From Macrostomum lignano (Eukaryota): a stretch of 64,000 nucleotides of DNA. A program made the translations under genes and the position numbers. The stretch covers positions 35,291 through 99,290 of the forward strand of contig NIVC01002402.1 in NCBI GenBank assembly GCA_002269645.1, read 5' to 3'. Below are positions 3,001 through 64,000 of the stretch, piece by piece; the stretch's first letter is position 1; every line of letters begins with the position of its first letter. Below the pieces are notes generated by a model. The model was not told the origin of the DNA. It worked only from the letters and a program-made list of their open reading frames with translations, and did not search any database.

Positions 3001-6000
3001 ATGACACTCAATGGGGCTGATATACACAGGTGCAAAGATGACGCAGAGCCCGCTACTCTCAGCATCTCTAACTAGCCCTGTCGCTGTCAATATATAGAAT
3101 TAAATGGAGAGCTTAGAAATGACACTCAATGGGGCTGATATACACAGGTGCAAAGATGACGCAGAGCCCGCTACTCTCAGCATCTCTAACTAGCCCTGTC
3201 GCTGTCAATATATAGAATTAAATGGAGAGCTTAGAAATGACACTCAATGGGGCTGATATACACAGGTGCAAAGATGACGCAGAGCCCGCTACTCTCAGCA
3301 TCTCTAACTAGCCCTGTCGCTGTCAATATATAGAATTAAATGGAGAGCTTAGAAATGACACTCAATGGGGCTGATATACACAGGTGCAAAGATGACGCAG
3401 AGCCCGCTACTCTCAGCATCTCTAACTAGCCCTGTCGCTGTCAATATATAGAATTAAATGGAGAGCTTAGAAATGACACTCAATGGGGCTGATATACACA
3501 GGTGCAAAGATGACGCAGAGCCCGCTACTCTCAGCATCTCTAACTAGCCCTGTCGCTGTCAATATATAGAATTAAATGGAGAGCTTAGAAATGACACTCA
3601 ATGGGGCTGATATACACAGGTGCAAAGATGACGCAGAGCCCGCTACTCTCAGCATCTCTAACTAGCCCTGTCGCTGTCAATATATAGAATTAAATGGAGA
3701 GCTTAGAAATGACACTCAATGGGGCTGATATACACAGGTGCAAAGATGACGCAGAGCCCGCTACTCTCAGCATCTCTAACTAGCCCTGTCGCTGTCAATA
3801 TATAGAATTAAATGGAGAGCTTAGAAATGACACTCAATGGGGCTGATATACACAGGTGCAAAGATGACGCAGAGCCCGCTACTCTCAGCATCTCTAACTA
3901 GCCCTGTCGCTGTCAATATATAGAATTAAATGGAGAGCTTAGAAATGACACTCAATGGGGCTGATATACACAGGTGCAAAGATGACGCAGAGCCCGCTAC
4001 TCTCAGCATCTCTAACTAGCCCTGTCGCTGTCAATATATAGAATTAAATGGAGAGCTTAGAAATGACACTCAATGGGGCTGATATACACAGGTGCAAAGA
4101 TGACGCAGAGCCCGCTACTCTCAGCATCTCTAACTAGCCCTGTCGCTGTCAATATATAGAATTAAATGGAGAGCTTAGAAATGACACTCAATGGGGCTGA
4201 TATACACAGGTGCAAAGATGACGCAGAGCCCGCTACTCTCAGCATCTCTAACTAGCCCTGTCGCTGTCAATATATAGAATTAAATGGAGAGCTTAGAAAT
4301 GACACTCAATGGGGCTGATATACACAGGTGCAAAGATGACGCAGAGCCCGCTACTCTCAGCATCTCTAACTAGCCCTGTCGCTGTCAATATATAGAATTA
4401 AATGGAGAGCTTAGAAATGACACTCAATGGGGCTGATATACACAGGTGCAAAGATGACGCAGAGCCCGCTACTCTCAGCATCTCTAACTAGCCCTGTCGC
4501 TGTCAATATATAGAATTAAATGGAGAGCTTAGAAATGACACTCAATGGGGCTGATATACACAGGTGCAAAGATGACGCAGAGCCCGCTACTCTCAGCATC
4601 TCTAACTAGCCCTGTCGCTGTCAATATATAGAATTAAATGGAGAGCTTAGAAATGACACTCAATGGGGCTGATATACACAGGTGCAAAGATGACGCAGAG
4701 CCCGCTACTCTCAGCATCTCTAACTAGCCCTGTCGCTGTCAATATATAGAATTAAATGGAGAGCTTAGAAATGACACTCAATGGGGCTGATATACACAGG
4801 TGCAAAGATGACGCAGAGCCCGCTACTCTCAGCATCTCTAACTAGCCCTGTCGCTGTCAATATATAGAATTAAATGGAGAGCTTAGAAATGACACTCAAT
4901 GGGGCTGATATACACAGGTGCAAAGATGACGCAGAGCCCGCTACTCTCAGCATCTCTAACTAGCCCTGTCGCTGTCAATATATAGAATTAAATGGAGAGC
5001 TTAGAAATGACACTCAATGGGGCTGATATACACAGGTGCAAAGATGACGCAGAGCCCGCTACTCTCAGCATCTCTAACTAGCCCTGTCGCTGTCAATATA
5101 TAGAATTAAATGGAGAGCTTAGAAATGACACTCAATGGGGCTGATATACACAGGTGCAAAGATGACGCAGAGCCCGCTACTCTCAGCATCTCTAACTAGC
5201 CCTGTCGCTGTCAATATATAGAATTAAATGGAGAGCTTAGAAATGACACTCAATGGGGCTGATATACACAGGTGCAAAGATGACGCAGAGCCCGCTACTC
5301 TCAGCATCTCTAACTAGCCCTGTCGCTGTCAATATATAGAATTAAATGGAGAGCTTAGAAATGACACTCAATGGGGCTGATATACACAGGTGCAAAGATG
5401 ACGCAGAGCCCGCTACTCTCAGCATCTCTAACTAGCCCTGTCGCTGTCAATATATAGAATTAAATGGAGAGCTTAGAAATGACACTCAATGGGGCTGATA
5501 TACACAGGTGCAAAGATGACGCAGAGCCCGCTACTCTCAGCATCTCTAACTAGCCCTGTCGCTGTCAATATATAGAATTAAATGGAGAGCTTAGAAATGA
5601 CACTCAATGGGGCTGATATACACAGGTGCAAAGATGACGCAGAGCCCGCTACTCTCAGCATCTCTAACTAGCCCTGTCGCTGTCAATATATAGAATTAAA
5701 TGGAGAGCTTAGAAATGACACTCAATGGGGCTGATATACACAGGTGCAAAGATGACGCAGAGCCCGCTACTCTCAGCATCTCTAACTAGCCCTGTCGCTG
5801 TCAATATATAGAATTAAATGGAGAGCTTAGAAATGACACTCAATGGGGCTGATATACACAGGTGCAAAGATGACGCAGAGCCCGCTACTCTCAGCATCTC
5901 TAACTAGCCCTGTCGCTGTCAATATATAGAATTAAATGGAGAGCTTAGAAATGACACTCAATGGGGCTGATATACACAGGTGCAAAGATGACGCAGAGCC

Positions 6001-9000
6001 CGCTACTCTCAGCATCTCTAACTAGCCCTGTCGCTGTCAATATATAGAATTAAATGGAGAGCTTAGAAATGACACTCAATGGGGCTGATATACACAGGTG
6101 CAAAGATGACGCAGAGCCCGCTACTCTCAGCATCTCTAACTAGCCCTGTCGCTGTCAATATATAGAATTAAATGGAGAGCTTAGAAATGACACTCAATGG
6201 GGCTGATATACACAGGTGCAAAGATGACGCAGAGCCCGCTACTCTCAGCATCTCTAACTAGCCCTGTCGCTGTCAATATATAGAATTAAATGGAGAGCTT
6301 AGAAATGACACTCAATGGGGCTGATATACACAGGTGCAAAGATGACGCAGAGCCCGCTACTCTCAGCATCTCTAACTAGCCCTGTCGCTGTCAATATATA
6401 GAATTAAATGGAGAGCTTAGAAATGACACTCAATGGGGCTGATATACACAGGTGCAAAGATGACGCAGAGCCCGCTACTCTCAGCATCTCTAACTAGCCC
6501 TGTCGCTGTCAATATATAGAATTAAATGGAGAGCTTAGAAATGACACTCAATGGGGCTGATATACACAGGTGCAAAGATGACGCAGAGCCCGCTACTCTC
6601 AGCATCTCTAACTAGCCCTGTCGCTGTCAATATATAGAATTAAATGGAGAGCTTAGAAATGACACTCAATGGGGCTGATATACACAGGTGCAAAGATGAC
6701 GCAGAGCCCGCTACTCTCAGCATCTCTAACTAGCCCTGTCGCTGTCAATATATAGAATTAAATGGAGAGCTTAGAAATGACACTCAATGGGGCTGATATA
6801 CACAGGTGCAAAGATGACGCAGAGCCCGCTACTCTCAGCATCTCTAACTAGCCCTGTCGCTGTCAATATATAGAATTAAATGGAGAGCTTAGAAATGACA
6901 CTCAATGGGGCTGATATACACAGGTGCAAAGATGACGCAGAGCCCGCTACTCTCAGCATCTCTAACTAGCCCTGTCGCTGTCAATATATAGAATTAAATG
7001 GAGAGCTTAGAAATGACACTCAATGGGGCTGATATACACAGGTGCAAAGATGACGCAGAGCCCGCTACTCTCAGCATCTCTAACTAGCCCTGTCGCTGTC
7101 AATATATAGAATTAAATGGAGAGCTTAGAAATGACACTCAATGGGGCTGATATACACAGGTGCAAAGATGACGCAGAGCCCGCTACTCTCAGCATCTCTA
7201 ACTAGCCCTGTCGCTGTCAATATATAGAATTAAATGGAGAGCTTAGAAATGACACTCAATGGGGCTGATATACACAGGTGCAAAGATGACGCAGAGCCCG
7301 CTACTCTCAGCATCTCTAACTAGCCCTGTCGCTGTCAATATATAGAATTAAATGGAGAGCTTAGAAATGACACTCAATGGGGCTGATATACACAGGTGCA
7401 AAGATGACGCAGAGCCCGCTACTCTCAGCATCTCTAACTAGCCCTGTCGCTGTCAATATATAGAATTAAATGGAGAGCTTAGAAATGACACTCAATGGGG
7501 CTGATATACACAGGTGCAAAGATGACGCAGAGCCCGCTACTCTCAGCATCTCTAACTAGCCCTGTCGCTGTCAATATATAGAATTAAATGGAGAGCTTAG
7601 AAATGACACTCAATGGGGCTGATATACACAGGTGCAAAGATGACGCAGAGCCCGCTACTCTCAGCATCTCTAACTAGCCCTGTCGCTGTCAATATATAGA
7701 ATTAAATGGAGAGCTTAGAAATGACACTCAATGGGGCTGATATACACAGGTGCAAAGATGACGCAGAGCCCGCTACTCTCAGCATCTCTAACTAGCCCTG
7801 TCGCTGTCAATATATAGAATTAAATGGAGAGCTTAGAAATGACACTCAATGGGGCTGATATACACAGGTGCAAAGATGACGCAGAGCCCGCTACTCTCAG
7901 CATCTCTAACTAGCCCTGTCGCTGTCAATATATAGAATTAAATGGAGAGCTTAGAAATGACACTCAATGGGGCTGATATACACAGGTGCAAAGATGACGC
8001 AGAGCCCGCTACTCTCAGCATCTCTAACTAGCCCTGTCGCTGTCAATATATAGAATTAAATGGAGAGCTTAGAAATGACACTCAATGGGGCTGATATACA
8101 CAGGTGCAAAGATGACGCAGAGCCCGCTACTCTCAGCATCTCTAACTAGCCCTGTCGCTGTCAATATATAGAATTAAATGGAGAGCTTAGAAATGACACT
8201 CAATGGGGCTGATATACACAGGTGCAAAGATGACGCAGAGCCCGCTACTCTCAGCATCTCTAACTAGCCCTGTCGCTGTCAATATATAGAATTAAATGGA
8301 GAGCTTAGAAATGACACTCAATGGGGCTGATATACACAGGTGCAAAGATGACGCAGAGCCCGCTACTCTCAGCATCTCTAACTAGCCCTGTCGCTGTCAA
8401 TATATAGAATTAAATGGAGAGCTTAGAAATGACACTCAATGGGGCTGATATACACAGGTGCAAAGATGACGCAGAGCCCGCTACTCTCAGCATCTCTAAC
8501 TAGCCCTGTCGCTGTCAATATATAGAATTAAATGGAGAGCTTAGAAATGACACTCAATGGGGCTGATATACACAGGTGCAAAGATGACGCAGAGCCCGCT
8601 ACTCTCAGCATCTCTAACTAGCCCTGTCGCTGTCAATATATAGAATTAAATGGAGAGCTTAGAAATGACACTCAATGGGGCTGATATACACAGGTGCAAA
8701 GATGACGCAGAGCCCGCTACTCTCAGCATCTCTAACTAGCCCTGTCGCTGTCAATATATAGAATTAAATGGAGAGCTTAGAAATGACACTCAATGGGGCT
8801 GATATACACAGGTGCAAAGATGACGCAGAGCCCGCTACTCTCAGCATCTCTAACTAGCCCTGTCGCTGTCAATATATAGAATTAAATGGAGAGCTTAGAA
8901 ATGACACTCAATGGGGCTGATATACACAGGTGCAAAGATGACGCAGAGCCCGCTACTCTCAGCATCTCTAACTAGCCCTGTCGCTGTCAATATATAGAAT

Positions 9001-11650
9001 TAAATGGAGAGCTTAGAAATGACACTCAATGGGGCTGATATACACAGGTGCAAAGATGACGCAGAGCCCGCTACTCTCAGCATCTCTAACTAGCCCTGTC
9101 GCTGTCAATATATAGAATTAAATGGAGAGCTTAGAAATGACACTCAATGGGGCTGATATACACAGGTGCAAAGATGACGCAGAGCCCGCTACTCTCAGCA
9201 TCTCTAACTAGCCCTGTCGCTGTCAATATATAGAATTAAATGGAGAGCTTAGAAATGACACTCAATGGGGCTGATATACACAGGTGCAAAGATGACGCAG
9301 AGCCCGCTACTCTCAGCATCTCTAACTAGCCCTGTCGCTGTCAATATATAGAATTAAATGGAGAGCTTAGAAATGACACTCAATGGGGCTGATATACACA
9401 GGTGCAAAGATGACGCAGAGCCCGCTACTCTCAGCATCTCTAACTAGCCCTGTCGCTGTCAATATATAGAATTAAATGGAGAGCTTAGAAATGACACTCA
9501 ATGGGGCTGATATACACAGGTGCAAAGATGACGCAGAGCCCGCTACTCTCAGCATCTCTAACTAGCCCTGTCGCTGTCAATATATAGAATTAAATGGAGA
9601 GCTTAGAAATGACACTCAATGGGGCTGATATACACAGGTGCAAAGATGACGCAGAGCCCGCTACTCTCAGCATCTCTAACTAGCCCTGTCGCTGTCAATA
9701 TATAGAATTAAATGGAGAGCTTAGAAATGACACTCAATGGGGCTGATATACACAGGTGCAAAGATGACGCAGAGCCCGCTACTCTCAGCATCTCTAACTA
9801 GCCCTGTCGCTGTCAATATATAGAATTAAATGGAGAGCTTAGAAATGACACTCAATGGGGCTGATATACACAGGTGCAAAGATGACGCAGAGCCCGCTAC
9901 TCTCAGCATCTCTAACTAGCCCTGTCGCTGTCAATATATAGAATTAAATGGAGAGCTTAGAAATGACACTCAATGGGGCTGATATACACAGGTGCAAAGA
10001 TGACGCAGAGCCCGCTACTCTCAGCATCTCTAACTAGCCCTGTCGCTGTCAATATATAGAATTAAATGGAGAGCTTAGAAATGACACTCAATGGGGCTGA
10101 TATACACAGGTGCAAAGATGACGCAGAGCCCGCTACTCTCAGCATCTCTAACTAGCCCTGTCGCTGTCAATATATAGAATTAAATGGAGAGCTTAGAAAT
10201 GACACTCAATGGGGCTGATATACACAGGTGCAAAGATGACGCAGAGCCCGCTACTCTCAGCATCTCTAACTAGCCCTGTCGCTGTCAATATATAGAATTA
10301 AATGGAGAGCTTAGAAATGACACTCAATGGGGCTGATATACACAGGTGCAAAGATGACGCAGAGCCCGCTACTCTCAGCATCTCTAACTAGCCCTGTCGC
10401 TGTCAATATATAGAATTAAATGGAGAGCTTAGAAATGACACTCAATGGGGCTGATATACACAGGTGCAAAGATGACGCAGAGCCCGCTACTCTCAGCATC
10501 TCTAACTAGCCCTGTCGCTGTCAATATATAGAATTAAATGGAGAGCTTAGAAATGACACTCAATGGGGCTGATATACACAGGTGCAAAGATGACGCAGAG
10601 CCCGCTACTCTCAGCATCTCTAACTAGCCCTGTCGCTGTCAATATATAGAATTAAATGGAGAGCTTAGAAATGACACTCAATGGGGCTGATATACACAGG
10701 TGCAAAGATGACGCAGAGCCCGCTACTCTCAGCATCTCTAACTAGCCCTGTCGCTGTCAATATATAGAATTAAATGGAGAGCTTAGAAATGACACTCAAT
10801 GGGGCTGATATACACAGGTGCAAAGATGACGCAGAGCCCGCTACTCTCAGCATCTCTAACTAGCCCTGTCGCTGTCAATATATAGAATTAAATGGAGAGC
10901 TTAGAAATGACACTCAATGGGGCTGATATACACAGGTGCAAAGATGACGCAGAGCCCGCTACTCTCAGCATCTCTAACTAGCCCTGTCGCTGTCAATATA
11001 TAGAATTAAATGGAGAGCTTAGAAATGACACTCAATGGGGCTGATATACACAGGTGCAAAGATGACGCAGAGCCCGCTACTCTCAGCATCTCTAACTAGC
11101 CCTGTCGCTGTCAATATATAGAATTAAATGGAGAGCTTAGAAATGACACTCAATGGGGCTGATATACACAGGTGCAAAGATGACGCAGAGCCCGCTACTC
11201 TCAGCATCTCTAACTAGCCCTGTCGCTGTCAATATATAGAATTAAATGGAGAGCTTAGAAATGACACTCAATGGGGCTGATATACACAGGTGCAAAGATG
11301 ACGCAGAGCCCGCTACTCTCAGCATCTCTAACTAGCCCTGTCGCTGTCAATATATAGAATTAAATGGAGAGCTTAGAAATGACACTCAATGGGGCTGATA
11401 TACACAGGTGCAAAGATGACGCAGAGCCCGCTACTCTCAGCATCTCTAACTAGCCCTGTCGCTGTCAATATATAGAATTAAATGGAGAGCTTAGAAATGA
11501 CACTCAATGGGGCTGATATACACAGGTGCAAAGATGACGCAGAGCCCGCTACTCTCAGCATCTCTAACTAGCCCTGTCGCTGTCAATATATAGAATTAAA
11601 TGGAGAGCTTAGAAATGACACTCAATGGGGCTGATATACGCAGGTGCAAA
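1..11650. repeat. 118-bp tandem satellite array, about 99 copies, running off the window start
   Basis: Unit CTAACTAGCCCTGTCGCTGTCAATATATAGAATTAAATGGAGAGCTTAGAAATGACACTCAATGGGGCTGATATACACAGGTGCAAAGATGACGCAGAGCCCGCTACTCTCAGCATCT. The register shifts 2 nt per 120 nt, giving a period of 118. The array ends mid-unit at ...CAGGTGCAAA (11650). Confidence 0.99.
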
Positions 11651-21887: not shown

Positions 21888-24313
<2,426 letters not shown>

Positions 24314-27661: not shown

Positions 27662-28249
27662 TCACTTATAGTGGTAGCGGTCCAGGCGCAGGTGCCGCAT
27701 GAAGCCGTGGCAGCAGGCGCCCAGCAGCGATGGAAACACGGCGGGCAGGGCGAAGGCCAGCAGCAGCAGCAGCACCGAGCAGCAGCCGGAGAGCCACATG
27801 GAGAACCAGGGCTCCGTGACGGGGCTCTGCCGCAGCAGCATGGGCGCGGTCAGCCCGAACAGGAACATCCCGATAGACAGGACGGCGCCGTGGCACAGCA
27901 GCAGCACCGCCAGCTGTGCCGACCGGCTCGGAATCAGCCGGCGCCTGCGACGGGCCGGACCGCCGCTCTCCTCTGCAGGCTCGGACTGTGGCGGGTGCAC
28001 CTGGTCGCGCTTCCTGGCGCTCTCGCAGGCGTCCTCGAGGCTGCCGTGCTGCCGGCTGACGCTGAAAAGGTCGGTCATCGTCACGTCTCGGCGGGCGATG
28101 AACTTCAACAGTAGGCTGGAGGCGTAGGACTCCACGGAGGAGGTGCCGTTCCTGTTCAGGCCAATGATCTCCCGCTGCTGCTGCAGCATGTCGCTGCGCA
28201 TCCGGGTGCCGCGGGATGAGGACACCTGCGACCGGCGTTGCGGCTTCAT
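27662..28249 (-). CDS. Intronless 195-aa orphan protein with two predicted C-terminal TM helices
   Basis: GC-rich, non-repetitive ORF from ATG to stop, with hydrophobic segments LAVLLLCHGAVLSIGMFLFGLTA and WFSMWLSGCCSVLLLLLAFALPAVF. Confidence 0.65.
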   Translation of the reverse strand: MKPQRRSQVSSSRGTRMRSDMLQQQREIIGLNRNGTSSVESYASSLLLKFIARRDVTMTDLFSVSRQHGSLEDACESARKRDQVHPPQSEPAEESGGPARRRRRLIPSRSAQLAVLLLCHGAVLSIGMFLFGLTAPMLLRQSPVTEPWFSMWLSGCCSVLLLLLAFALPAVFPSLLGACCHGFMRHLRLDRYHYK

Positions 28250-41451: not shown

Positions 41452-44692
<3,241 letters not shown>

Positions 44693-44809
44693 AGTCTTCG
44701 CTGGACTCGGGGCTGGGGGCGTGGAGAGATGCTGAACTGAGTATCTGAGCATGCTCTGAGCATTGCGCAGGATTTTGCATTCCTTTTACAGCAAATTTCG
44801 GATGTCAAA

Positions 44810-47691: not shown

Positions 47692-50600
47692 TCAGTCTTC
47701 GTCGCGGCTTCTTGCCAGGCTGTGCGAGAAGCACGAACTGCAGCACTGGGCCTGCGCGTATTCACAGGCTCGTGCATCATTCTGGAGCACCAGGCTGCAG
47801 TATTCAGCGTCCTGGTCCAAGCAGTCCGGCGGCGGTGTATCGGCTGAATTTCAAGATATACGTTGTGTTTTTCAATTTGTTTTCTCAGTTATTTAAGCTG
47901 AGTCGTCCAAAAGTTTGTTGAGCAGAATTTGCTTACCCGAGATGCACTCCGTCTGGAACTTGGTGCAATCGTTGATGTCTAGGCAGAATGGCCGGCAGAC
48001 CTGGCCTTTATTGCAGGTGTTGTCCTGGCACGGGTTGATGCACTGGCAGGTTGAACAGGTTTTATTGTCCCTCTGGTATCCATAGCGACACCTGGTGTCG
48101 CACTGAACATCGCCACATTCTGCAAATGTTGACAGTTTTGATTCTGATGCGTCCCGAACGATGATGACCTTCTTGTCTTGGGAATCTTGTGTGCTTTTAC
48201 GAGAGTTTTAATCCTATTGCTTAGCAGAGGATATTTTCAGTGGGTAGCATTTCAGTGTCGAAAGGACACTCACGGGACATCACAGTGACGGTAACTCGCT
48301 CAGACTCCACTGTCTCGAACTGGTTCGTGACCCGCAGGAAGTACCTCCCACTGTGCGACAGCTTCAGCGGGTCCAAGTCCAAAGACATGCCGGTGCCGAG
48401 AGGCGCAGCGGTTGCGACTGATCCGTTGGTTGAAGACTCGCTCTGCTGCACCTCCTTGAACCAGAGATACAAGAAGGGTGCCGGGTACCCCGCTTTTAGC
48501 TGGCTCTGCAGCCGGATGCGACCGCCTTCCTCAGTTTTGCCGGCCGGACTGATGACTTCAACGGCTGCCCGCAGTGGCTCGCGGAATTCAATACTCGTCT
48601 TGGCCTGGACCGGCGGCCCGGCCTCGTTCTCGGCTTTGCAGGTGTACTCAGCCACTGCGGCGGGGCCGACTGTCAGATTCAGTGTGTCGGCCTGCGTTCG
48701 TTTTGAGTTTCGAGTGTTTGTTTTATCTACGGCTATCTATGTGGAATAGAAGCAGAGTGTGCTAGAAGCAAACTCACTATTTCCCCTGGAATCGTCTGAT
48801 CGTACTTCAACCAGCGGATTTCCGGCTTTGGCTTCCCAGTAGCGTTGCAGATCAGCTGGATTTGTTCGCCCCGCACCAGCAGCGGCTGCTCGGGCGCCTC
48901 GAGGCTCAGGATGGTCGCGGGCACCTGAACTGCCAGACTGATCTTGCGCGCGGCTTGGCCCTCTGAGTTGTAAGCGGAGCATTCGTATTCGCCCGAGTCG
49001 GATTCCGTGACTTGGCGCAACTTCAGTTTCTGGCCATCGATGCGGACTCGCTGGTCTTGCACCACCGGCCGGTTGTCCTTGAGCCACATCACAGTAGGCT
49101 TTGGCACCGCCAAGAAGCCGCAGTCCAATTTCAGTCGAACGCCCTCGAGCACGACGATGCTCTGCATAGGGCTGGGAAACTTGCTTTTGGGAGCGAACGG
49201 CGGGCAGTTAGTCAGACTCGGGTTGTCCGCCGTAGTCTCTCCGTCCGGGCAGCAGCCGTGGGGCGTCTTGTCGCACGGGACCTGCGGCGGCCGATTTGTT
49301 GTCGGCGGCGGCGGCGTCACGTAGGGATTCTGGCAGGAGCGGCCTTGGGCGCAGCCGCTCTGGCAGCACTTTTGCCTCTCGTCCGGGCAGTCGAGGTCAA
49401 AGTCGCACTGGCGCTCGCAGGCGTCGCCAGAGATTTTCAGCGGCGGACAGTCGCCCGGCGAGTCACTGCGGAGTTTTTCGTTGAAAATTGGCTGAATGCA
49501 AGGGATTCATAACTGCCTACCATTGAAGCCGCGAAATTCTATTAGAACTTCAGCACTAAGTAGTGAAAATGGTGAAATAGTATATACTACTTTTTATTCT
49601 TCACCTCAGGAGTAATATCTACGGCTTTTTATTTCGACTTTCGATAAGCAAGCTGATTGAGTGTAGAGTGTAGAGATTGAGAAACAAGCTGGTGAGTGTA
49701 GCCCTAGCAGAATGCAATCCAACAAAATAGATATGCCAGCTTAACTACTCAGATGAAAACTCACACGCTAAACACTTTGCATTGACCTCGGAGCACTGCT
49801 CATCGTTGCAGCTGGCCTTGCAGCGCTCGGTTGGCGGGCATTTTCCCTCGCAAGGATCAAAGCATCGGCAGATGAGGCAGCCGCTGCTGTCCAGCTGCTG
49901 AACGCTGCGCTTGTACTTGCAGTCTGTCGGGCATGGCGAGCTGGTTGGGCACTCTGAAATAATTAATGCGGACTTTAGCGGAGCGGCCTTTCATCACTTT
50001 AAAAAATCGTGACAACAGTTTTCGCGATGAATCCAAGCCTCAATCTCTTTAAAACTACTTCAATACAGTTTAGAAGCACATATAGAAGTACTGAGTCAGA
50101 CAACGGCTTACTCTTCGTCGCCACTGGACAGGCGCTCTCGCAAGCCGAGCGGCTCCAGAAGGCGGCACCGCGCAGCTCCGTGTCGCCGCAGAATTCAAGC
50201 GCCGATTGGAAGACTTCGCAGCTGAATGTCTCTTTCTTGAACACGAACACCTTTTGGAGCTTTCCGTCCGGACAAGAGGCCGCTGGCGTTTTGGTAACCA
50301 CTTCAGGTGACTCTGATAGGCACTTCTCCATGCCGAAAGTTGTTGTCGGCGTCGGTGCTTCCATGGCTGTTGTGGTTGGATCAGATGTCGTTGTAGTGGC
50401 GCTTGTCGTGGTGGCTAGTAGGCGAGCTGCGGTGGGTGCGGCCGAGCGAGCGGAAGCCTTCCCGCGCGGCCTTCGCATCTTGACGACTCGGCTGGCTCTG
50501 CACTGCTCCTTGCATTGCTCCCCACTGGCAAACAGGTTCCGACTGCCGCCGCAGCCATTATAGGTGAACTCGTAACAATTTTTGGTGCTACCTCGGTAAA

Positions 50601-53600
50601 AGTACATTACCTTTCGTGAGACTTCCGGGGTCTGTCCGGGGCAGATCTGGCCGTGAGACGGTGGGTACAAACAGGGATCCCTTTGCAGCTGGTCCTCGCA
50701 CATGTTTTTGCACTCGCTCATCGTTAAGAAGCGATTTCGATTGCCAAGGCAGCCACCGTATGTCATCTCCTCACAGGCGCCCGTCGTCTGATTAAAGTAG
50801 TATCGCTTCAGGTTGGCCTTGCAAGGGCCGGGGTCGCTCTCCAGAAAGCAGATTAGGTGTCTCTTTTCCGGATAGCAGAAGCTCTTGCATTCGTCCACGA
50901 TTTGAAGAAGTTCATGCCGATTCCGTGTCTACCCATGGACTGGTAGCAGTTGAAAGTTTTATAATCAAAGTAGAATCCTTGTCCCTGGCTATTGGCAGTA
51001 TTCCGAGTTTCGGTTTCGGCGCTCGGCGGTGTTGGAGCGTCTTTGGGCAGCTGGCAGCGTCCTGCATCATGTCCAAGGCCATCCAGCTGCCGCTACAAAG
51101 CTTCTGGTGCGCTTCGCACAGGCTTCCGGGTGAACATGCCGGTGCTGTGCTCTGGCACAAAGGCTGTCGGCTCGAGTCTGGGGGGATCAGAGTTCAATTA
51201 TTGTGCCATTGAAACCGAGCCTAGTTTGCGTCAAACTGAAATAAACTGATTGAAATTGCTTCTTAGATATAAGAACTACATGTAGCAAATTAATAGCCAG
51301 ACGATATTGTACTTAAACTACTACTATTCATAAGCACCCTTCCTTCCTACTGTAGTTCCTGCAGGCGTAATGACAGTCCTCGCCAGTCTCGAAGTTGTTC
51401 CCGTTGCCACCGCAGCCAGTGTATTTAAACGTGCGGCATTCATCCTTCGTTGGGTCGTAAAAGTACCTTAACAGTCGTTTTCCGTCCGTCATAGGACAGG
51501 AGCCAGCGGACGGTGGCAGTCTGCAGACGCTGCCTTCGACTAGGAGTGGCGGCTGATCATCCGCTGTCGGCAGTCGGCTGCTGTTCAGCGACGCTCGGGG
51601 CGGCGGCGCTGTAGCTGCCGCTACAACGCAAGTCTTTCGGCAGTCGGCCTCATCAAAGAACGATTTTTGTTGCCATGACAACCGGAATAGCTGAACGGCT
51701 GGCATTTGAGCTGCTCCGAGTCGTAGTAGTAGCGGAGCAGCTTTTTCCCTTGGAATTCGCACGAGCCGGGATCTCGCGGAAGGCTGCAGAGCTCTGCAAC
51801 AACAAGTTTCATTCGAATGGTTTGGAACGTTACCGGTTCCACAGAGGCGAGGGGAGCCGTGGCCCGACTATTGCCCTGCGATTTTTGTGCCAGGTTGAAG
51901 TTGGTAAACAGTGACCACTGTTTCTCTCTTACTAATTTCGGCATTCTACTTGTTTGCCTGTGTTTAGATTCCTACATCGTGTCTCCATCCTTAAAGCAGA
52001 GATTTTTAGCTGCTTTGTTCAACACTGCATGCTTAAATATGGTTGTGTGCCCTTCATTCCGGGAGCCATTGATCTTGTCTCTGTATCTGCCTCCGTTTCC
52101 TATGCTTCCCATCGACAGATGGCAAACAACCTGGCCATCCAAAGTAAGAGGTAGAACTGTGATGGACCCAGACCTGCAACAGAGCGGGGCAGACAGAACT
52201 TCTGACACTCCTCCAGGGAAGCAAAACTGTTGCTGACAACCTCCGTGCCGCACGCTTGCCGACTGATGCACTGCTTTGTTTGCTCGTTGTAGAAGTACTT
52301 CTTCTCTCGGAACGGACAAAATGTGCCGTCCTTCTCGGATTTGAAAACGGCAAAGCATCGATCTGGAATCGGAAGTCACGTTGGCTTCAATTTAAGTTGT
52401 CGATTCAGCGTTTAGTTATAATGCGCAAATTGGCTCGCACCCTGAATGACACTGTCAGTTGCGGGCCGCACACACAGGTCGCTGCAAGCTTGCTTCTGCT
52501 GGAAGAACTTGGTCTCTCCCAGCCTGCTGCACTCGGCCGTGTCCTTGAGCACAGCTTGGATGCAGGTGCCGATCTTCTTCACGTAGTAGTAAACAAGAGA
52601 ACTACTTGAGTACTTCGAACTGTCGTAGTCGATGCAATCCGTTGCCTCCTCGAACGAGCAGTTGATGTTGCTGCTTTCTAACGAAGTTGATTTAATGCAA
52701 CGTGACTCATTAGTGTCCCTAGTGCATTTTTCCCACAACCCAAGTCATTCATTTGCTTTGTATGCATGTAAGCTCGTAGCAGTGAAGAACCCACCAAGCA
52801 AAAATAGCAAGGTTGGCGAAACTCACGTTCAAAGCGTCTCTGACAAGAATTCTCACATGACTCTATGGAGTCGAAGCGGTTCGAGGAGCCAGCGCTACCG
52901 TAGTAGTTGTAGGGCATGCAGCGACCTTGATTGGGCTGGTAGCCATAGACTGTGATGGCTCTCGAGTCTGACATCCCGTTGATGTGATCGCCTTGACTTG
53001 TCTCCTGACGACATGGCTCGAAATCTAGGAAATATTAACATTATACAGAAATAGCTTTTAGTCTACAGATTACTAATACTAATTATTTTTATTAGAACAC
53101 CCTTACTTAATATTGGCATCGAATCGCTGGGTGTTGGTTGACTGGTTGGTACAAGCGGGTTGAGCTGACCAGCGCTTCTTCCGCTTCCAGTCTCGTTCTG
53201 CCGTCCTCGAGATCCTGGAGGCGTATTCATTGTAGTTATTACCCTACTCCCTGATTCCGTTGTTGCCATGGATTCCTTAGTTGGTTCCTCTGTTTTAGTC
53301 GTTGGTTCCTCAGTTGTAGTCGTTGGTTCCTCAGTTGTAGTCGTTGGTTCCTCAGTTGTAGTAGTTGGTTCCTCCGTTGTAGTCGTTTGTTCCTCAGTTG
53401 TAGTAGTTGGTTCCTCCGTTGTAGTCGTTGGTTCCTCCGTTGTAGTCGTTGGTTCCTCCGTTGTAGTCGTTGGTTCCTCAGTTGTAGTCGTTAGTTCCTC
53501 AGTTTGTAGTTAGTTCCTCAGTTGTAGTCGTTGGTTCCTCAGTTGTAGTAGTTGGTTCCTCAATTGTTGTCGTTGGTTCTTCAGTTGTAGTCGTTAGTTC

Positions 53601-54455
53601 CTCAGTTGTAGTAGTTGGTTCCTCAGTTGTAGTAGTTGGTTCCTCAGTTGTAGTAGTTGGTTCCTCAGTTGTAGTAGTTGGTTCCTCAGTTGTAGTAGTT
53701 GGTTCCTCAGTTGTAGTAGTTGGTTCCTCAGTTGTTGTCGTTGGTTCCTCAGTTGTAGTAGTTGGTTCCTCAGTTGTAGTAGTTGGTTCCTCAGTTGTAG
53801 TAGTTGGTTCCTCAATTGTTGTCGTTGGTTCTTCAGTTGTAGTCGTTGGTTCCTCAGTTGTAGTAGTTGGTTCCTCAATTGTTGTCGTTGGTTCTTCAGT
53901 TGTAGTCGTTGGTTCCTCAGTTGTAGTAGTTGGTTCCTCAGTTGTAGTAGTTGGTTCCTCAGTTGTAGTAGTTGGTTCCTCAGTTGTAGTCGTTGGTTCT
54001 TCAGTTGTAGTCGTTGGTTCCTCAGTTGTAGTCGTTGGTTCCTCAGTTGTAGTCGTTGGTCCGTCGTTTGTCGTTAATTCTTCTGTTGCTATTGGCTGTT
54101 CAGTTGTTTGTTCCTCATTTATCGCTGGCTGCATAACTTGTGTTGTACCTGCTACTCCTGAAGTTTCAGTTTGATCTGAAATATTATAAAAAATTATAGT
54201 TTGTATCTTTAAGCATCTCATAGATGCACATGGCACTGAAATAGATGTTAGAAAAATATTTTAGATTCAATAAGAGAACTTTCTCCAAAAGCGTCTACTC
54301 ATTGTGATGCGGGTAAGTTGAAGCGGGTGCGGATCTTGAACTATAGATAATTTATTACCCGTTTGAGCTTCTGCAGCAGCAATTGTCGTCAGCAGCACTA
54401 GAACAAGCGCCGCAGCCGCCCCAGTAGCAAACGGAGTTCTGTTCCGGACCGTCAT
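47692..54455 (-). CDS. Papilin/lacunin-like extracellular protein: signal, mucin-like EEPTTTT repeat, multiple Kunitz domains, antistasin-like, WAP, papilin-type GCCPDG repeat, Ig domains, antistasin-like, C-terminal PLAC; four apparent frameshifts in this assembly
   Basis: Signal exon 54455-54359; mucin exon 54175-53107; Kunitz exons from 53024 down to ~50100; CPTSSPCPTDCKYK...GCLICRCFDPC; WAP PGDCPP...C..DLDCP..QKCCQSGC; CDKTPHGCCPDG; Ig motifs (LDC...W...DSGEYECSAYN, YTCKAEN); last exon 47843-47692 CLDQDAEYCSLV...C...CCSSC..*. Confidence 0.85.
53275..54060 (-). repeat. Coding 21-bp repeat (EEPTTTT)n, a mucin-like O-glycosylation tract
   Basis: Direct reading and translation. Confidence 0.95.
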
Positions 54456-56414: not shown

Positions 56415-59400
56415 ATGAATCAGCAGCAGAAGCAGCACAAATCGCAGGTCCCGACTTCTGCAGCCGTTGCCGCGAGCACGCTGATCCGCGTGCGGCCCGA
56501 GTTCTACCTGGCCGACCTGGGTCCGCAGACGCCGCCAGCGCTCACCTTTGCGCTGCCGCCTCGAGCATTCGACGCTTCCTCCGGTTTCGGAGGAGCCGTC
56601 GTCAACAGCGCCTCGTCCAGCTGCTCCCTGCCTGCGGACGTGTCTGACGCCGGGCGCGGAGGCGCTGAAGATGACGACGCGCCCACGGCTGGCAGGATCG
56701 ACCACCGGCAGGTGCCACCGCGGAAGAACTCTGCCACGAGTCCGCTTTTAGTCTGCACTTGCCAGCGACAGGCGAACGATGAAGATGCTGACGATGGGCA
56801 GTGGCTGTCCCAGCCGCCGCCGCTTCATCCGTCCGTTCGTCATTCCAATGTGAGAAACAGCTGAGTTGTTTCAGGGCTTCAGAATTCGTGTTTTGCTGGA
56901 AAAATATTTCTAAAATCCTGATAAAACTGCAGTTACCATTTATCTTTGAGATGTTTACAGGAGTTTTTGTACATGAAGAAACCAACTCTACCGTGATTTG
57001 ACCCCGTATGCTACTCGAATTGAACATAACCTCAATCTTGATCCTTGATCCTTGATCCATCCTTGATCAAGGATCCACAGCTTGATCCCAAAGACATCCC
57101 GATCCCAAAGACACCTCAATCTCAAAAGACACATTGATCCCTAAGACATTGATCCCAAAGACACCCTGATCCCAAAGACACCCCGATTCCAAAGACACCC
57201 CGATCCCAAAGACACCCCGATCCCAAAGACACCCCGATTCCAAAGACACCCCGATCCCAAAGACACCCCGATCCCTAAGACACCCCCTAAGACACCCCGA
57301 TCCCAAAGACACCCCGATTCCAAAGACACCCCGATCCCAAAGACACCCGATTCCAAAGACACCCCGATCCCAAAGACACCCCGATTCCAAAGACACCCCG
57401 ATCCCAAAGACACCCCGATCCCAAGGACACCCCGATCCCAAAGACACCCCGATCCCGAGGAAAGCCTGCACCAGAGCAGCAAGTAGCTAGCTGTAACTGA
57501 ACGAATATCAGGTAATGTCAGGATGTCTGAGGATACGAGTATTTTGACTGAACAATAATTTGATGATAAACTGGTTATGCTGTAAGCGTTATCAACTATC
57601 CACCTCGCAGACTCAGCTGTTCGGCCACTCCAGAGGTGAACGTCAGTTTGACGCCGAGCTGGAATCTGCATCCGCGTCAGTGGAATATCGTCATGAGGTA
57701 TTTTTGGACATTCTCCTGCATGTTATTACGAGCCTACCTTATGAGAAAATAGAATTCCTACCTACATTGGCGCGAGAAAGCTGTAAGTTCAAGGCCGATG
57801 CTCTCCCCCAAAAAAAAGCCGATTACTGCCCCATCAGCTCTTGAATGAAGCTGGCACTTCGCCGGCGCACGCCTTGCGGTCATGAGCCAGCGAGACTCAG
57901 TTGTCAGAGGATCAGAAGCGGGCATGGATTTTCTGAAAGCAAATGGACCCTAATGCCCTATTTTTGAGTCTCTTTTTCCGATTCTCCCACTCCGCAGTCG
58001 ATGGAAAAGCTTTCCTTTTCTTTTTTTTTGAAAGTTGAAACTCAGTTTAAAAGTTCCTCTTAAGCGCTCCATCTTTCGAAATGCGGACCGGGCTTTTCCA
58101 CCTTGAGCAAGGATTGCCACCCCGAGGCGACTCATCGATTTCACTCGCCTTATTCCTCGGTTCTTTAGCCGAAGCAGCCTAGACATTGTGGGGGGGGGGG
58201 GTTCCAGGGCTGATGGCAAGAAAAATCCCACCAAAAACAACATTGACGGGTGGAACAGGCGGCCGAGCGCGAGCGAGACGGCTTCGCCTCGGCAACGCGC
58301 CGCCTGGAGGAAGAGAATGAAAGCCTGCGGCGGCAGCTGCGTGACGCGCGCAGGCGACTGGAGGACGCCGAGCAGGAGTCCGACCGGCTGCGAGCGGCGC
58401 ACCAGCGCGCTGAGAGAGCGCTCGAAGGCCGGGAGCGGCTGCAGAGGCTGCGTGTTCGAGCTTTGGAGCAGCAGGTGCGCGTGTTTAGATATTGCGCCAG
58501 CCTTTTGCCTTTTCTGCTTTGATTGCAGCTTTGAAACATTTGGCTGCCAGTGACATTTAGCTGCCAGTGACATTTGAATGTCAGTGAAATTTGACTGTCA
58601 GGGACATTTGATTGTCAGTGACTTTTGGCTACCAGTGACATTTGACTGTCAGTGACATTCGACTGTCAGTGACATTTGACTGCCAGTGACATTTGACTGC
58701 CAGTGACATTTGACTGTCAGCGACATTTGATTGTCAGTGACTTTTGGCTACCAGTGACATTTGGCTGCCAGTGACATTTGACTGTCAGTGACATTTGACT
58801 GCCAGTGAAATTTGACTGTCAGTGACATTTGGCTGCCAGTGACATTTAGCTGCCAGTGACATTTGAATGTCAGTGAAATTTGACTGTCAGGGACATTTGA
58901 TTGTCAGTGACTTTTGGCTACCAGTGACATTTGACTGTCAGTGACATTCGACTGTCAGTGACATTTGACTGCCAGTGACATTTGACTGCCAGTGACATTT
59001 GACTGTCAGCGACATTTGATTGTCAGTGACTTTTGGCTACCAGTGACATTTGGCTGCCAGTGACATTTGACTGTCAGTGACATTTGACTGCCAGTGAAAT
59101 TTGACTGTCAGTGACATTTGGCTGCCAGTGACATTTGACTGTCAGTGACATTTGACTGCCAGTGACATTTGACTGTCAGTGACATTTGACTGTCAGTGAC
59201 ATTTGGCTGCCAGTGACATTTGACTGCCAGTGACATTTGGCTGTACATCTGGGATTAAATCTCAGGCGAATTCCATAACGGGAATGGAAACTCCTGTCCT
59301 CAGATTTCAGCCCTGAAGGTGCAGCAGCAGCAGAAGGAGGAAGCGGCTGAGGAGGAGCATCGGCGAGCATCGAGGCGGTCGTCGTCGCTGCGACGCCATC

Positions 59401-59615: not shown

Positions 59616-60330
59616 CGCTCACAAGGGTCTCGAGCCGGGCTGGCCCCGAACTCGTGCTGTTTTTAGCAATGAATTTCCCATGGCTAATAGTTGTATTTAG
59701 TTTGTTGTCTTTTAGGTTTAGTTGTCACAAACAATATCAATAAAAGCAATACGATTTGAGCATATTTAATAACAATGAAGTAGTTCCGGGTCTCAAAGGA
59801 TGTCTCAAAGAAAAATAAAGTATTTAATTTATGCTCGTGTCGAATTTCTAAAATACTCTCTTTCGAGCTGTAATTGACGTCACTACCATATTGGTGGGCC
59901 TTGGAGAACTCTGATCAAAAAGCAGCCAAGGTGTCGCGTGCTTCGAAAGAAAATCGAGTAAATTCGGGGGCAGGTAAATTCGTTTGATTTTCTTCGGCCA
60001 TATACTGAGACTCAGAGCAGCGATGTATTAGCCAGAGTTAACAATTTTCGCAGAGAAAATATTGCTACATATTAGGAATATTGCGGATGTAACGAGTCGC
60101 CTAAGTGATTGCGTGATTTATAGGGCGAGAATCGGTACAGATCAGTGCCCGGCAACTGGGCATGGGACAGCAAAATGCGTTCTGATCGGATCTGATTGGT
60201 TGTAACAAGGCCTGACCACTCACCTTCGAAATCAACTTTCTAATCATATATAGACTCGAATGCTTGCCATGGCAGCACGTGTGCTGCAGTTCTAGATTTA
60301 TTCAACATAGAGAACCTGTCAAAAGAAACA

Positions 60331-60647
60331 ATGAGCTGGCTACAACTGCTGCTACTCGTTGCCGTGTCAACAAGTACCGCCAGATCTTACGCCTCAGGCG
60401 GCCGCCATCACGCCTTTCTGGCCCAGTCGACCGACGCCTTCGACGATCCGGACTCGCTGAAGGAGTACCTGTTGAATCTCAACCGATATTTTGCCTCGCT
60501 GGGCAGACCCAGGTAATGCATCTGCAACTTACATTTTTGTATGCACTGTAGTAACTATAAGCTCAATTCCCGCTTCGATTCCAAACTTTCAGATACAACA
60601 AGCGTGCGATGGACAATGCGGTGAAGCTGAAGGCTGACGATCAGTAA
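60331..60647 (+). CDS. NPF: Neuropeptide F/Y precursor (2 exons)
   Basis: Signal peptide MSWLQLLLLVAVSTSTARS, then ...FDDPDSLKEYLLNLNRYFASLGRPR|Y. Tyr sits at positions 10 and 17 from the C-terminus. A phase-2 intron (60513-60592) splits the penultimate Arg codon, as in NPF/NPY genes. Exon 2 encodes YNKRAMDNAVKLKADDQ*. AATAAA follows at ~60665. Confidence 0.9.
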
Positions 60648-61659
60648 TGTGTGGGTGATTCCCACAATAAATTCCCACAAACACTTGGTTATTTGTTAAA
60701 TAGACTATGAAACGTACGAGCAAGATGAATGTACATGTACTTCGAATACATGTCACAAATAAGGACGAACGAAGTCCCTCTTGTGTAAAGGGCTTTTTTC
60801 TTGGCAAAAATACTTACCAACGTTACGAACTGCTTCGTGGTTGGACAAATAAATTTATTGTGCAAGTTCTCCTTCGAGAAATGATAAATTATTGAAAAGC
60901 GCCAATGCACGACAAGCTAGATGAGTTAAATAACATACGCAAAGACTCAGAACTCAGGCCAATTTAGAAAAAAATGTTTCAAGACAATATTGCTGCCAAA
61001 AATGGAAAGACAATGCAGCTTCTTTCATTTTAATTAACCGGAACATGAATTGTGCAATTGTGGATGTGGGTTCAATGCAGTTCTATGGTGACCTGCTAGA
61101 GTTAGGCTTCGATCGCACAAAAGCCATGCGATATGATGACGATCGTGCCGGCTTCTTCAGCAAGACGTAACGCGGTGGAGTGCTGTTAGCGCAGACCTTG
61201 GTACTTGATGACACCAACAAAAATAATATAAATGCAACAGCGTCTGTTTCGACTTCAACAGCCTTAGCGGCTGCAGCAAAACTCACTGCCGCTTCGCTCA
61301 TCAGTGCTCACAGCCGCACCCCGAAGCCCGAGTCCACGCTGATGATGGAGACTCCGGCCAAATTTCAAAAAGCTAGCGTGTGAGGTGGGTGGGGCACAGA
61401 ACTCGGGTCACCTGTGCGTGTCCATGTCCTTGCACTGTTCAGCTGGTGGAGCTGAGGACCTAACAAAGCACCGCCTGGTCTCGTTGGTCACTTGGTCACT
61501 TCGTTGGTCACTGGCCTTACCCAGGCAGACCTTATAGACCTTCAACAGGTGGCACCAGTTGACTATGGATACCCTGTTGCGAATTTCTCTATGACCAGTA
61601 TGAGCATAATTCATGGAGTAAAATCGGCATCAGTTATTCTATTCTGTTGGTGTGTTCTA

Positions 61660-61757
61660 TTCATCATCATCATCTTCATCATCATCATCGTCATAATCAT
61701 AATCTTCATCATCATCATAATCATCATCACCATCAGCATCATTATCATCATCATCAT
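61660..61757. repeat. (ATC)n microsatellite
   Basis: Direct reading. Confidence 0.9.
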
Positions 61758-63332
61758 TTCCTAACAGCCTCCCATACAGCCTGACGGCAGCCATATCATT
61801 CAGCTATAAATACAGTATAAAATTCTCAATATGATGCTTTAAAAGCATTTTCAAGCGAAATTATGAATAATTTGTGCATCGGACAGCAAGCCGGGCGGTC
61901 AGATCCGGACAATGGGCGAAAAACCCGCTCTGCAGACCGGGCATGCGGGTCCTCCTTTGTCCGCCTCAACTCGCTGCTGCACGGACTTGCTCGCTGGTGA
62001 CAACTTCCACTATACGAGCTGCTAAAATGATCTGTTTATTGATTTTCAAGCTTCACAGGGGCTGTGAGAGTGTGGATCAGAGAAAGGGAACCAATTTTGA
62101 GCAGCAAGGACTGATAGAAAACAATATGGGAACCAAGGGATGAAAAAAGAGAGATCATTTTCTCCCGTTTGTAAGTTGTCACGAGGAGGCTTTCAGGACA
62201 GAGTTTTTCATTGCCTTTATAATCGCATTAACTCTATAGTGGCTATCACTAAATTCATGTCACAGGCAGGAAAGCGAAGACTGAAAAGAGCTGTGCTAAA
62301 GTGGAAAGTCCCTAACAAAGCAGTCTAAAGCCAAAACAGAGTCAGAGTAGCGAAGGTGAACAGTGGCTGGTGAGCTGAGCTGCTGTCGCAACCACTTGAT
62401 GTAGCGGAAAAAAAGTCGAAACGCTTCTCCAGTCCCCCCAGAGATATGACTTCAGACCCCTGAGCAGCGAATGTCCTGAGATTGCTGCTCCACGGTCGAA
62501 AGCTGCCGCTGTTGCCGCTTGAATCAGCTGTGTGGGGAACTGCAACCGACAGAGAGGGGGCGAGTCGCTGACCAGATCGGATTGAAAACAGAAGCGCATC
62601 GGGACCGTCTGCCGCCACCTGGTTTCGCTTGAGATGCGCTTTGGCACTGTGGCAGCCAGACTTGGTGGTGCCGTGGTGGCATTAAGAGAACTGATTGGTA
62701 TCTTTCTACATGTAGTAGGCGCGGGTCCTTTAATCGAATAGCGCCAGCGGAGAGTCGCGAGTTTCGAGTCGCTACAGCAGATGGAAGACCCGGGTTCCAT
62801 CCTTGCTTCCTTGCTTAACAGGAGCTGCAATGACTGCATGCGTCAGCGGATTCGGGGATGCCGCAGAGTTCTGGGCTGGTGACTAGCTTCAGTGCCGATT
62901 TCAATTAATTGAAATGAATTAGCATTACCTGCTCATTGAAATTCCACTTTCTGATCGAACTACCTAGGCAAGTTCGTGACAGCGCGAATTGCAGACCTTG
63001 AAAATATCCACAACATGTCTGTGGCCAACCCGAGAAACCTGCGGGTGCAGGCAACCCCGCCCTCCCTGTAGTCTGACACAAAGATCGATGAGTGTGACCG
63101 ATAAATTTTCGACTACTACTATACTACGATATATAGATATGATACGAGAATTTTACATAAAAAAGCTCTAGAAGAGCCAAGAGCTCCGCAAGTTTTGCCA
63201 AAATACTACCAGTGCAACGAGGTCGCAGAAAAAAGCGCGTGCAATATGCTGACTAAGCATCAGGGAGTGTGCATGGTACATCACTCACGTTTCACTACAA
63301 GGACCACTGTAGTAGTAGTACAGTGGTCCTTG

Positions 63333-63471
63333 GTTTCACTAGCGAATCACTATTGGAGACGAAACCTCGTGGCGAATATTCATAATGAAAAAGTTTATTT
63401 ATCAGACATATTTTTTGCGATAGCGAATTGTTTTCTAAAAAATGGTGTGATGGTTTATTCGCTAGTGAAAC
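63333..63471. mobile_element. MITE-like element with perfect 15-bp inverted repeats
   Basis: GTTTCACTAGCGAAT (63333-63347) and ATTCGCTAGTGAAAC (63457-63471). Confidence 0.45.
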
Positions 63472-64000
63472 GTAAGTCGTGCATCTCTCTTCTTTATATT
63501 TTCATGGAACGGTACATTAAAACAAAACAGATCACTCTAGTTTAGGCAAAAAACGAGCGAAATAGCTTTAAACTCGCAGAAACATAAAAAATGAAGAACT
63601 GAGTTGTCGAAAAATTTGACTGCTGACAATTTATATTACAATTTAGACTTCCAATTCCATTTCGCGCGCTCTCATAGCTCGAGCACAAGTTGAGTACTGA
63701 GAGGGCTCTAGTCAAACTCAATATTTAGAATTTTATTATATTGAAAACTACCGACTGGGCATACAATCCCGTAAAATGTAGATGGCAGTAAAAATATGGC
63801 CACTCTATAGGTAGGACTAATTTTAATCTAACTTAGGCCACATATAAGGGGTAAACTAGAGAATTTCGAATTTCTGTGTTGCTAGTTTTTGTAATTCAGA
63901 ATGTTTTCAATTTACAATCAAGTAAACAAGCCTAGGCCTACTAGGCTCTAATATAATTGTCAAAACAGCCCACAATTTAAAATAGCTACATTGGCTAGAT

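Follow-up and report, generated by a model that had tools for sequence, protein, structure and literature searches.

A probable transcribed neuropeptide F/Y paralogue of the flatworm Macrostomum lignano with asparagine in place of the amidation-donor glycine

Peptides of the neuropeptide Y (NPY) and neuropeptide F (NPF) family are held to need a C-terminal amide for signalling almost without exception. Peptidylglycine alpha-hydroxylating monooxygenase needs a C-terminal Gly, and the free acid of NPY is essentially inactive. For RFamide-type peptides, the free acid was found to be without significant potency (PMC4058657). In planarians, reproductive maturation is controlled by NPY-family peptides, and the intron that splits the penultimate Arg codon in phase 2 occurs at the same position in 10 of 11 planarian npy genes and in vertebrate NPY genes (PMC2953531). 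The donor Gly is kept in all 11 npy genes of Schmidtea mediterranea, including the atypical npy-11, which ends in RPRL-GKR (PMC2953531, supplement). An expressed paralogue with every other NPF hallmark but without this Gly amounts to a natural experiment on the rule, with two outcomes: a freshly disabled ligand caught before its decay, or a peptide that signals without an amide.

The DNA analysed here, hereafter the window, was a stretch of 64,000 nucleotides from the free-living flatworm Macrostomum lignano (contig NIVC01002402.1, positions 35,291 to 99,290 of the forward strand). A two-exon NPF/NPY gene was read directly from the sequence at window 60331-60647 on the plus strand, and the coordinates and all sequence statements of the original prediction were found to be correct on direct reading. 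The features of the locus, all on the plus strand, are as follows.

60247-60253, plus strand: TATA-like box TATATAG, located by pattern scan, 30-36 nt upstream of the annotated transcript start.
60283-60330, plus strand: 5′ UTR, which the partial GenBank model PAA85310.1 translates in frame as AAVLDLFNIENLSKET; matches the window translation and the three-copy alignment.
60331-60512, plus strand: exon 1, with the ATG at 60331 and the 3′ end ...CTG GGC AGA CCC AG.
60331-60381, plus strand: signal peptide MSWLQLLLLVAVSTSTA, codons 1-17, with a predicted cleavage site (alternatives after Ser19 or Ala21).
60382-60512, plus strand: portion of the mature NPF-like peptide encoded by exon 1, RSYASGGRHHAFLAQSTDAFDDPDSLKEYLLNLNRYFASLGRP, and the Arg codon up to its second base; overlaps the Pfam Hormone_3 match (residues 31-63) and includes the helix of the structural model.
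60513-60592, plus strand: intron of 80 nt, GT..AG, phase 2, splitting the penultimate Arg codon (AG|A).
60593-60647, plus strand: exon 2, A|TAC|AAC|AAG|CGT GCG ... CAG, with the TAA stop at 60645-60647.
60593-60596, plus strand: third base of the Arg codon followed by TAC for Tyr (A|TAC), closing the RPRY motif, from the sequence.
60597-60599, plus strand: AAC, Asn at the position of the family's amidation-donor Gly, from the sequence; GGC in the paralogue Mlig022158.
60600-60605, plus strand: AAG CGT, Lys-Arg, the dibasic prohormone-convertase site at residues 64-65, from the sequence.
60606-60647, plus strand: C-terminal flanking peptide AMDNAVKLKADDQ and the TAA stop, from the sequence.
60666-60671, plus strand: AATAAA polyadenylation signal, located by scan, 19 nt past the stop.

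The splice donor is GTAATG at 60513, and the acceptor, ...ACTTTCAG, finishes at 60592. Splicing gives a product of 78 aa, MSWLQLLLLVAVSTSTARSYASGGRHHAFLAQSTDAFDDPDSLKEYLLNLNRYFASLGRPRYNKRAMDNAVKLKADDQ, with the layout MSWLQLLLLVAVSTSTARSYASGGRHHAFLAQSTDAFDDPDSLKEYLLNLNRYFASLGRPRY-N-KR-AMDNAVKLKADDQ, in which the mature part ends in ...LGRPRY. In the predicted signal peptide, small residues at -3/-1 come after the hydrophobic core LQLLLLVAV, and the segment aligns with its counterparts in other NPF precursors. In PAA85310.1, the partial CDS taken from the transcript begins at the equivalent of window 60283 with AAVLDLFNIENLSKET, which is the translation of 60283-60330, and this places the 5′ end of the transcript 30-36 nt downstream of the TATA-like box. 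Scans of the 64-kb window for tRNA genes and Rfam families returned no matches.

Residues 31-63 matched Pfam PF00159 (Hormone_3) with E=2.2e-11 and 44 bits, the curated cut-off being 28.7 bits. A phmmer search of 1.84 billion proteins returned NPF precursors, and in a profile search of PDB sequences the best match was Moniezia expansa NPF (1K8V, E=1e-7), followed by pancreatic polypeptide and PYY. When the Tyr before the Asn is counted as 1, Tyr is found at 10 and 17 and G-R-P-R at 5-2 (...KEY(17)LLNLNRY(10)FASLGRPRY(1)), and the C-terminal motif R-x-R-[F/Y] is present. The signal peptide, with its predicted cleavage site, runs straight into a single peptide, with no dibasic site before the KR at residues 64-65. 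The phase-2 intron in the Arg codon (CCC AG|gtaatg...tttcag|A TAC) agrees in position and phase with that of Mlig022158, and is also found at the same place in an unrelated invertebrate NPF locus. In an AlphaFold2 model built from 31 family sequences, residues 40-57 formed a helix (block pLDDT 76-85) and the GRPRYN tail was non-helical; confidence in the model as a whole was modest (mean pLDDT 65, pTM 0.31).

The hallmarks named in the original prediction (signal peptide, Tyr at -10 and -17, GRPR and the intron in the Arg codon) were thus borne out by the sequence, the 44-bit Hormone_3 match and the shared intron, the signal cleavage site remaining a predicted one. Its remark that a terminal Tyr is unusual for an invertebrate does not apply to flatworms, since 4 of 11 planarian npy genes (PMC2953531) and Mlig022158 end in Tyr. 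The Pfam profile, signal peptide, motif, intron and dibasic site all agree with the family, whereas the amidation donor does not, Asn standing there instead of Gly. The gene is therefore a flatworm NPF/NPY gene by descent, and is better termed a non-amidatable family variant than a standard NPY/NPF member. With high confidence, we regard it as a genuine, transcribed and expressed NPY/NPF prohormone paralogue of M. lignano that cannot be amidated at the canonical site.

The protein search returned one close cluster, consisting entirely of M. lignano proteins: PAA91104.1 (Mlig008652g2), PAA85310.1 (Mlig008652g1, partial) and UniProt A0A1I8J1G8, all of which read ...GRPRYNKR. The UniProt entry, which already carries the automatic name 'Neuropeptide F', presumably comes from an earlier, independent assembly. 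The window aligned with NIVC01000094.1 at 98% identity over ~9.4 kb (94-98% across ~13.6 kb aligned) and with NIVC01000337.1 at 1-3% divergence around the gene. Only the window has Asp77, matching neither of these contigs, and it therefore represents a third genomic copy of Mlig008652. In the three-way alignment, TAC AAC AAG CGT and intact splice sites were present in 3/3 genomic copies, the signal and mature peptides were identical at the protein level, and the sole amino-acid differences, A65V and D77A, lay in the C-terminal flanking peptide. M. lignano is a recent hidden polyploid whose genome contains large duplicated blocks (PMC5730564). For assembly Mlig_3_7, the annotation in GenBank was built from RNA evidence alone (PMC5730564): RNA-seq (StringTie/TACO), a transcriptome assembled de novo, and sites of trans-splicing and polyadenylation determined by experiment, the ORFs being predicted with TransDecoder. 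The models of PAA91104.1 and PAA85310.1 both use the junction equivalent to 60512^60593.

An artefact, that is, a sequencing or assembly error or a wrongly placed splice junction, is exceedingly improbable as the source of the Asn. A base error is excluded because the same AAC is found in three distinct genomic copies, which differ by 1-3% elsewhere, and as YNKR in A0A1I8J1G8; the junction agrees with the RNA-derived gene models and with the family-wide intron position. The expectation that AAC is not a base error and the spliced reading ...GRPRY-NKR both held. It had also been argued that AAC lies two substitutions from GGC; the count of bases is right, but two separate events need not be assumed, as GG>AA on one strand corresponds to CC>TT on the other, a tandem change that could have arisen as one.

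Restoration of the Gly at the RNA level was considered separately. Double A-to-I editing of AAC to IIC (read as GGC), or a 3′ exon lying beyond the window, would make the main product an amidated one. The window was scanned on both strands for AG followed by N-T[TA]Y-GGN and a basic codon or stop, the three forward frames of 60513-64000 were scanned for [FY]G[KR][KR], and every pyrimidine-rich acceptor was translated as joined to the 60512 donor. Between 60513 and the window end at 64000, no plus-strand alternative exon or acceptor yielded R[FY]-G-[KR] and no plus-strand frame contained [FY]G[KR][KR], so that the alternative acceptor or exon giving RF/RY-G-KR, by which the original prediction could have been refuted, was not encountered in this interval. 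The Gly-restoring pattern matched just once in the window, at 42809 of the minus strand, in unrelated sequence. A downstream exon is further disfavoured by the poly(A) signal just 19 nt past the stop, and the transcript-derived models take the 60593 acceptor.

As for editing, AAC is converted into GGC by just two A>G changes of the kind that ADAR makes, and the public protein models do not exclude it, since GenBank proteins are translations of the genomic sequence in which RNA editing is invisible. However, the pre-mRNA around AAC folded no better than shuffled sequences (z = +1.37), and the sole complementarity to the AAC site was a 9-nt, 89% inverted repeat in the intron. ADAR prefers other neighbouring bases than those that flank the site, which likewise counts against editing. 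Taken as a whole, RNA-level restoration of the Gly is very unlikely.

The surroundings of the gene are rich in repeats. Window 1-11650 is occupied by a 118-bp satellite array (98.7 copies, 99% identity) that extends past the window start, and ~12200-45600 by dense micro- and minisatellites of 0.3-1.2 kb each, whose units are CTGT, CTGTC, TATC, TCTG or 10-25 bp long. Most of the long 'ORFs' in this latter region overlap satellite arrays, and a Pfam scan of three of the window's ORFs (21888-22727, 27662-28249 and 44243-44752) gave no match. The upstream neighbour, on the minus strand at ~48700-54250, is a multi-exon gene with Kunitz/BPTI domains at 49999-50898 and 51328-51762 and I-set immunoglobulin domains at 48733-49320; on NIVC01000094.1, too, the NPF gene is flanked by this Kunitz/Ig gene of 1511 aa. 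In or beside the window's Kunitz/Ig gene, at 53280-54060, is a tandem array with a 21-bp (7-codon) unit. Minisatellites with a 17-bp unit are found 1-3 kb upstream of the NPF gene, at 57084-57456 (22 copies) and 58536-59244 (42 copies); they vary between the homeologous copies and inflate the apparent divergence of the flanks.

To place the change within the family, NPF/NPY/PP precursors of crustaceans, an insect, molluscs, an annelid and mammals were retrieved by profile search, and intron-truncated ORFs were removed. Gly followed the aromatic residue in 73/73 other peptide copies from the 54 retrieved precursors, and within this set Asn at the Gly position was confined to the three Mlig008652 proteins. 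Three other NPF gene families of M. lignano, Mlig022158, Mlig009822 and Mlig007142/003006, retain Gly. Mlig022158 encodes ...LARPRY-GKR and reads ...CAG|A TAC GGC AAG CGC with the same phase-2 intron; Mlig009822 has three RPRF-GKR copies, and Mlig007142/003006 two or three. The GGC of Mlig022158 in the same context indicates that the change in the window gene was GGC>AAC in otherwise conserved surroundings. The survey of flatworm NPF paralogues for Gly-to-Asn changes, which had been proposed as a check, was run, and the other M. lignano families and 11/11 planarian genes keep Gly. Judged from the sequences retrieved, loss of the Gly is rare in the NPY/NPF family. A literature search found no paper mentioning Mlig008652, its Gly loss or a non-amidated flatworm NPF.

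One metagenome ORF (P0010, ...AGRPRYNTTS) was considered as a second case of RPRYN and rejected, because its translation continues past exon 1 into intron sequence (CG|GTATAATACAAC). The genuine exon 2 of this locus lies 1.47 kb downstream and gives RPRF-GRS, and close relatives diverge right after RPR; the 'RPRYN' of P0010 is spurious and arose because a prokaryotic gene caller was applied to eukaryotic DNA. In about 20 such 'metagenome' proteins (P0010, P0023-P0044), exon 1 of an invertebrate NPF gene (...FPERPNVFRSPDELKEYLRALNEYFAIAGRPR) is followed by translated intron. The loci concerned (L004 at 3501-3722 and ~5195, L005 and L006; JGI 3300006913 and 3300027544, ENA ERZ27247802) are animal DNA in metagenome assemblies, and they show the conserved intron position independently.

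Other precursors met in the survey contain several peptides. At NIVC01000624.1 (L007) 6001-6426, Mlig007142 is one uninterrupted ORF of 141 codons with three tandem NPF copies, each ending in SRPRF-GKR, and without the family's intron in the Arg codon; one of the three repeats is absent from the GenBank model of 108 aa. A forward frame ~4 kb upstream (L007 ~2229-2330) contains further tandem NPF-like units, ...LSRF-GKR and ...SRPRY-GKR. Several NPF copies per precursor without an intron are, to our knowledge, unusual for the family. The best non-flatworm matches to the query were NPF precursors of the northern krill, Meganyctiphanes norvegica (P0004, P0012, P0021 and P0022), with three tandem GRPRF-GKR peptides.

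The fate of the precursor can be outlined from established prohormone processing. The signal peptide would be removed, most likely after Ala17 (alternatively after Ser19 or Ala21), a PC2-type convertase would cut after Lys64-Arg65, and a carboxypeptidase-E-type enzyme would trim Lys and Arg. The predicted product is a free acid ending in ...LGRPRYN, of 42-46 residues, or of 38 if Arg25 is also cleaved, and the 13-residue C-terminal peptide AMDNAVKLKADDQ would be released alongside. The product would stay a free acid because the amidating monooxygenase requires a C-terminal Gly. In this respect the original prediction, that the canonical site cannot be amidated and that the product should end in RPRYN, is upheld as far as the DNA can tell, with AAC in every copy and no Gly-restoring exon. 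The amidation machinery itself must exist in M. lignano, because the paralogues carry GKR sites, and canonical amidated NPFs would be supplied by Mlig022158 (RPRY-GKR) and by Mlig009822 and Mlig007142 (2-3 x RPRF-GKR). Since the free acids of related peptides are essentially inactive, the extra Asn and the carboxylate should weaken or redirect receptor binding, and a Tyr-Asn-OH terminus may fail to activate the classical receptors altogether.

That the RPRYN peptide is still secreted and keeps a signalling role, with its pharmacology altered by the Asn and the free carboxylate, is plausible and has close to an even chance. Such a peptide would not simply have dropped out; it would be weaker at classical NPF receptors, or would have moved to a different member of the expanded NPY-type receptor set of flatworms. 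A more specific version, in which the RPRYN free acid is a true ligand, a natural antagonist or a decoy and has a receptor of its own among these GPCRs, is unlikely. The gene may instead be real and transcribed while the loss of Gly killed the ligand, so that it is drifting towards a pseudogene and is tolerated through redundancy. We consider this inert relic possible but somewhat doubtful. It was absent from the original prediction, and is an equally live option beside the divergent ligand, antagonist or neofunctionalised paralogue proposed there.

Several observations fit an inert relic. An amide is required in related RFamide-type peptides (PMC4058657), Gly in 73/73 copies and in 11/11 planarian genes implies strong selection for it where the peptide is functional, and amidated NPFs from three other gene families provide redundancy. 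A hidden-polyploid genome with duplicated blocks (PMC5730564) would tolerate a dead copy, and the divergence of the CDS between copies is no lower than that of the flanks. Against it, the ORF, signal peptide, splice sites, KR, TATA box and poly(A) signal are intact in three copies with identical mature peptides, all hallmarks are preserved, with a Tyr at -10 that is more canonical than the residue in the amidatable Mlig022158, and expression is sufficient for transcript-derived annotation. This evidence is not decisive if the loss of Gly was recent.

The divergence between the copies was compared directly. All three substitutions in codons 1-64 were synonymous (P=0.016 under neutrality with all substitution types, 0.05 with transitions only). 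Substitutions in the 237-nt CDS and in the flanks numbered 5/237 versus 41/2970 for the window and L001, 1/237 versus 61/2963 for the window and L002, and 4/237 versus 81/2987 for the third pair. The CDS of Mlig008652 was no more conserved than the flanks, in copies just 1-3% apart with few substitutions (5, 1 and 4), and because the copies are so similar, purifying selection after the loss of Gly is not demonstrated by these counts. Two protein searches returned no orthologues from other Macrostomum species.

On balance, we lean slightly towards a secreted peptide with altered pharmacology over an inert relic. As an overall explanation, an expressed, non-amidatable paralogue combined with a signalling role is the one that we rate best, and we hold it to be reasonably probable. 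A biological role is at present a proposal, and the Asn may quite possibly be a recent mutation that left the peptide inert.

If the free acid is a true ligand, the NPY/NPF family would gain its first signalling member that is non-amidated in nature, and the amide, held to be obligatory in the family from flatworm to human, would be dispensable in evolution; if the peptide is inert, the result is merely an annotation caveat on the UniProt name 'Neuropeptide F'. As M. lignano is transgenic and RNAi-tractable, the question is directly testable.

Among described systems, M. expansa NPF (1K8V) and S. mediterranea NPY-1 resemble the window gene in having a signal peptide that is followed directly by a peptide of ~40 aa and a dibasic site, in the core FDDP...YL...LN.YFA..GRPR[F/Y] with Tyr at -10 and -17, and in the phase-2 intron in the Arg codon; 15/26 core residues are identical between the window gene and S. 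mediterranea NPY-1 by manual count. They differ in having Gly and a terminal Phe, where the window gene has Asn and a terminal Tyr. The paralogue Mlig022158 (PAA78650.1, ...LFDDPEVLRQYLRSLNGHYATLARPRY-GKR) shares the two exons, the split Arg codon AG|A and the terminal Tyr, with ~53% identity in the peptide region, but it has kept GGC (Gly) and is amidatable, and it has His-Tyr at -10/-9 in contrast to the Tyr-Phe of the window gene. Smed-npy-11 (...SRPRL-GKR) is likewise a flatworm paralogue with an altered C-terminus and a preserved gene organisation (PMC2953531); there the aromatic residue was changed and Gly-Lys-Arg kept, whereas the window gene kept the aromatic residue and lost the Gly.

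The nearest conceptual precedent is seminalplasmin/PYY2, a duplicate of the NPY family without the amidated RY end that took another role. It is reported to be non-amidated and non-hormonal (Herzog et al., 1995). The bovine protein has been named peptide YY2 (PYY2) (PMC2698874). It differs from the present case in being a vertebrate protein with a far more altered C-terminus and expression in the seminal vesicle, whereas in the window gene the change is limited to one codon and the NPF signature is otherwise intact.
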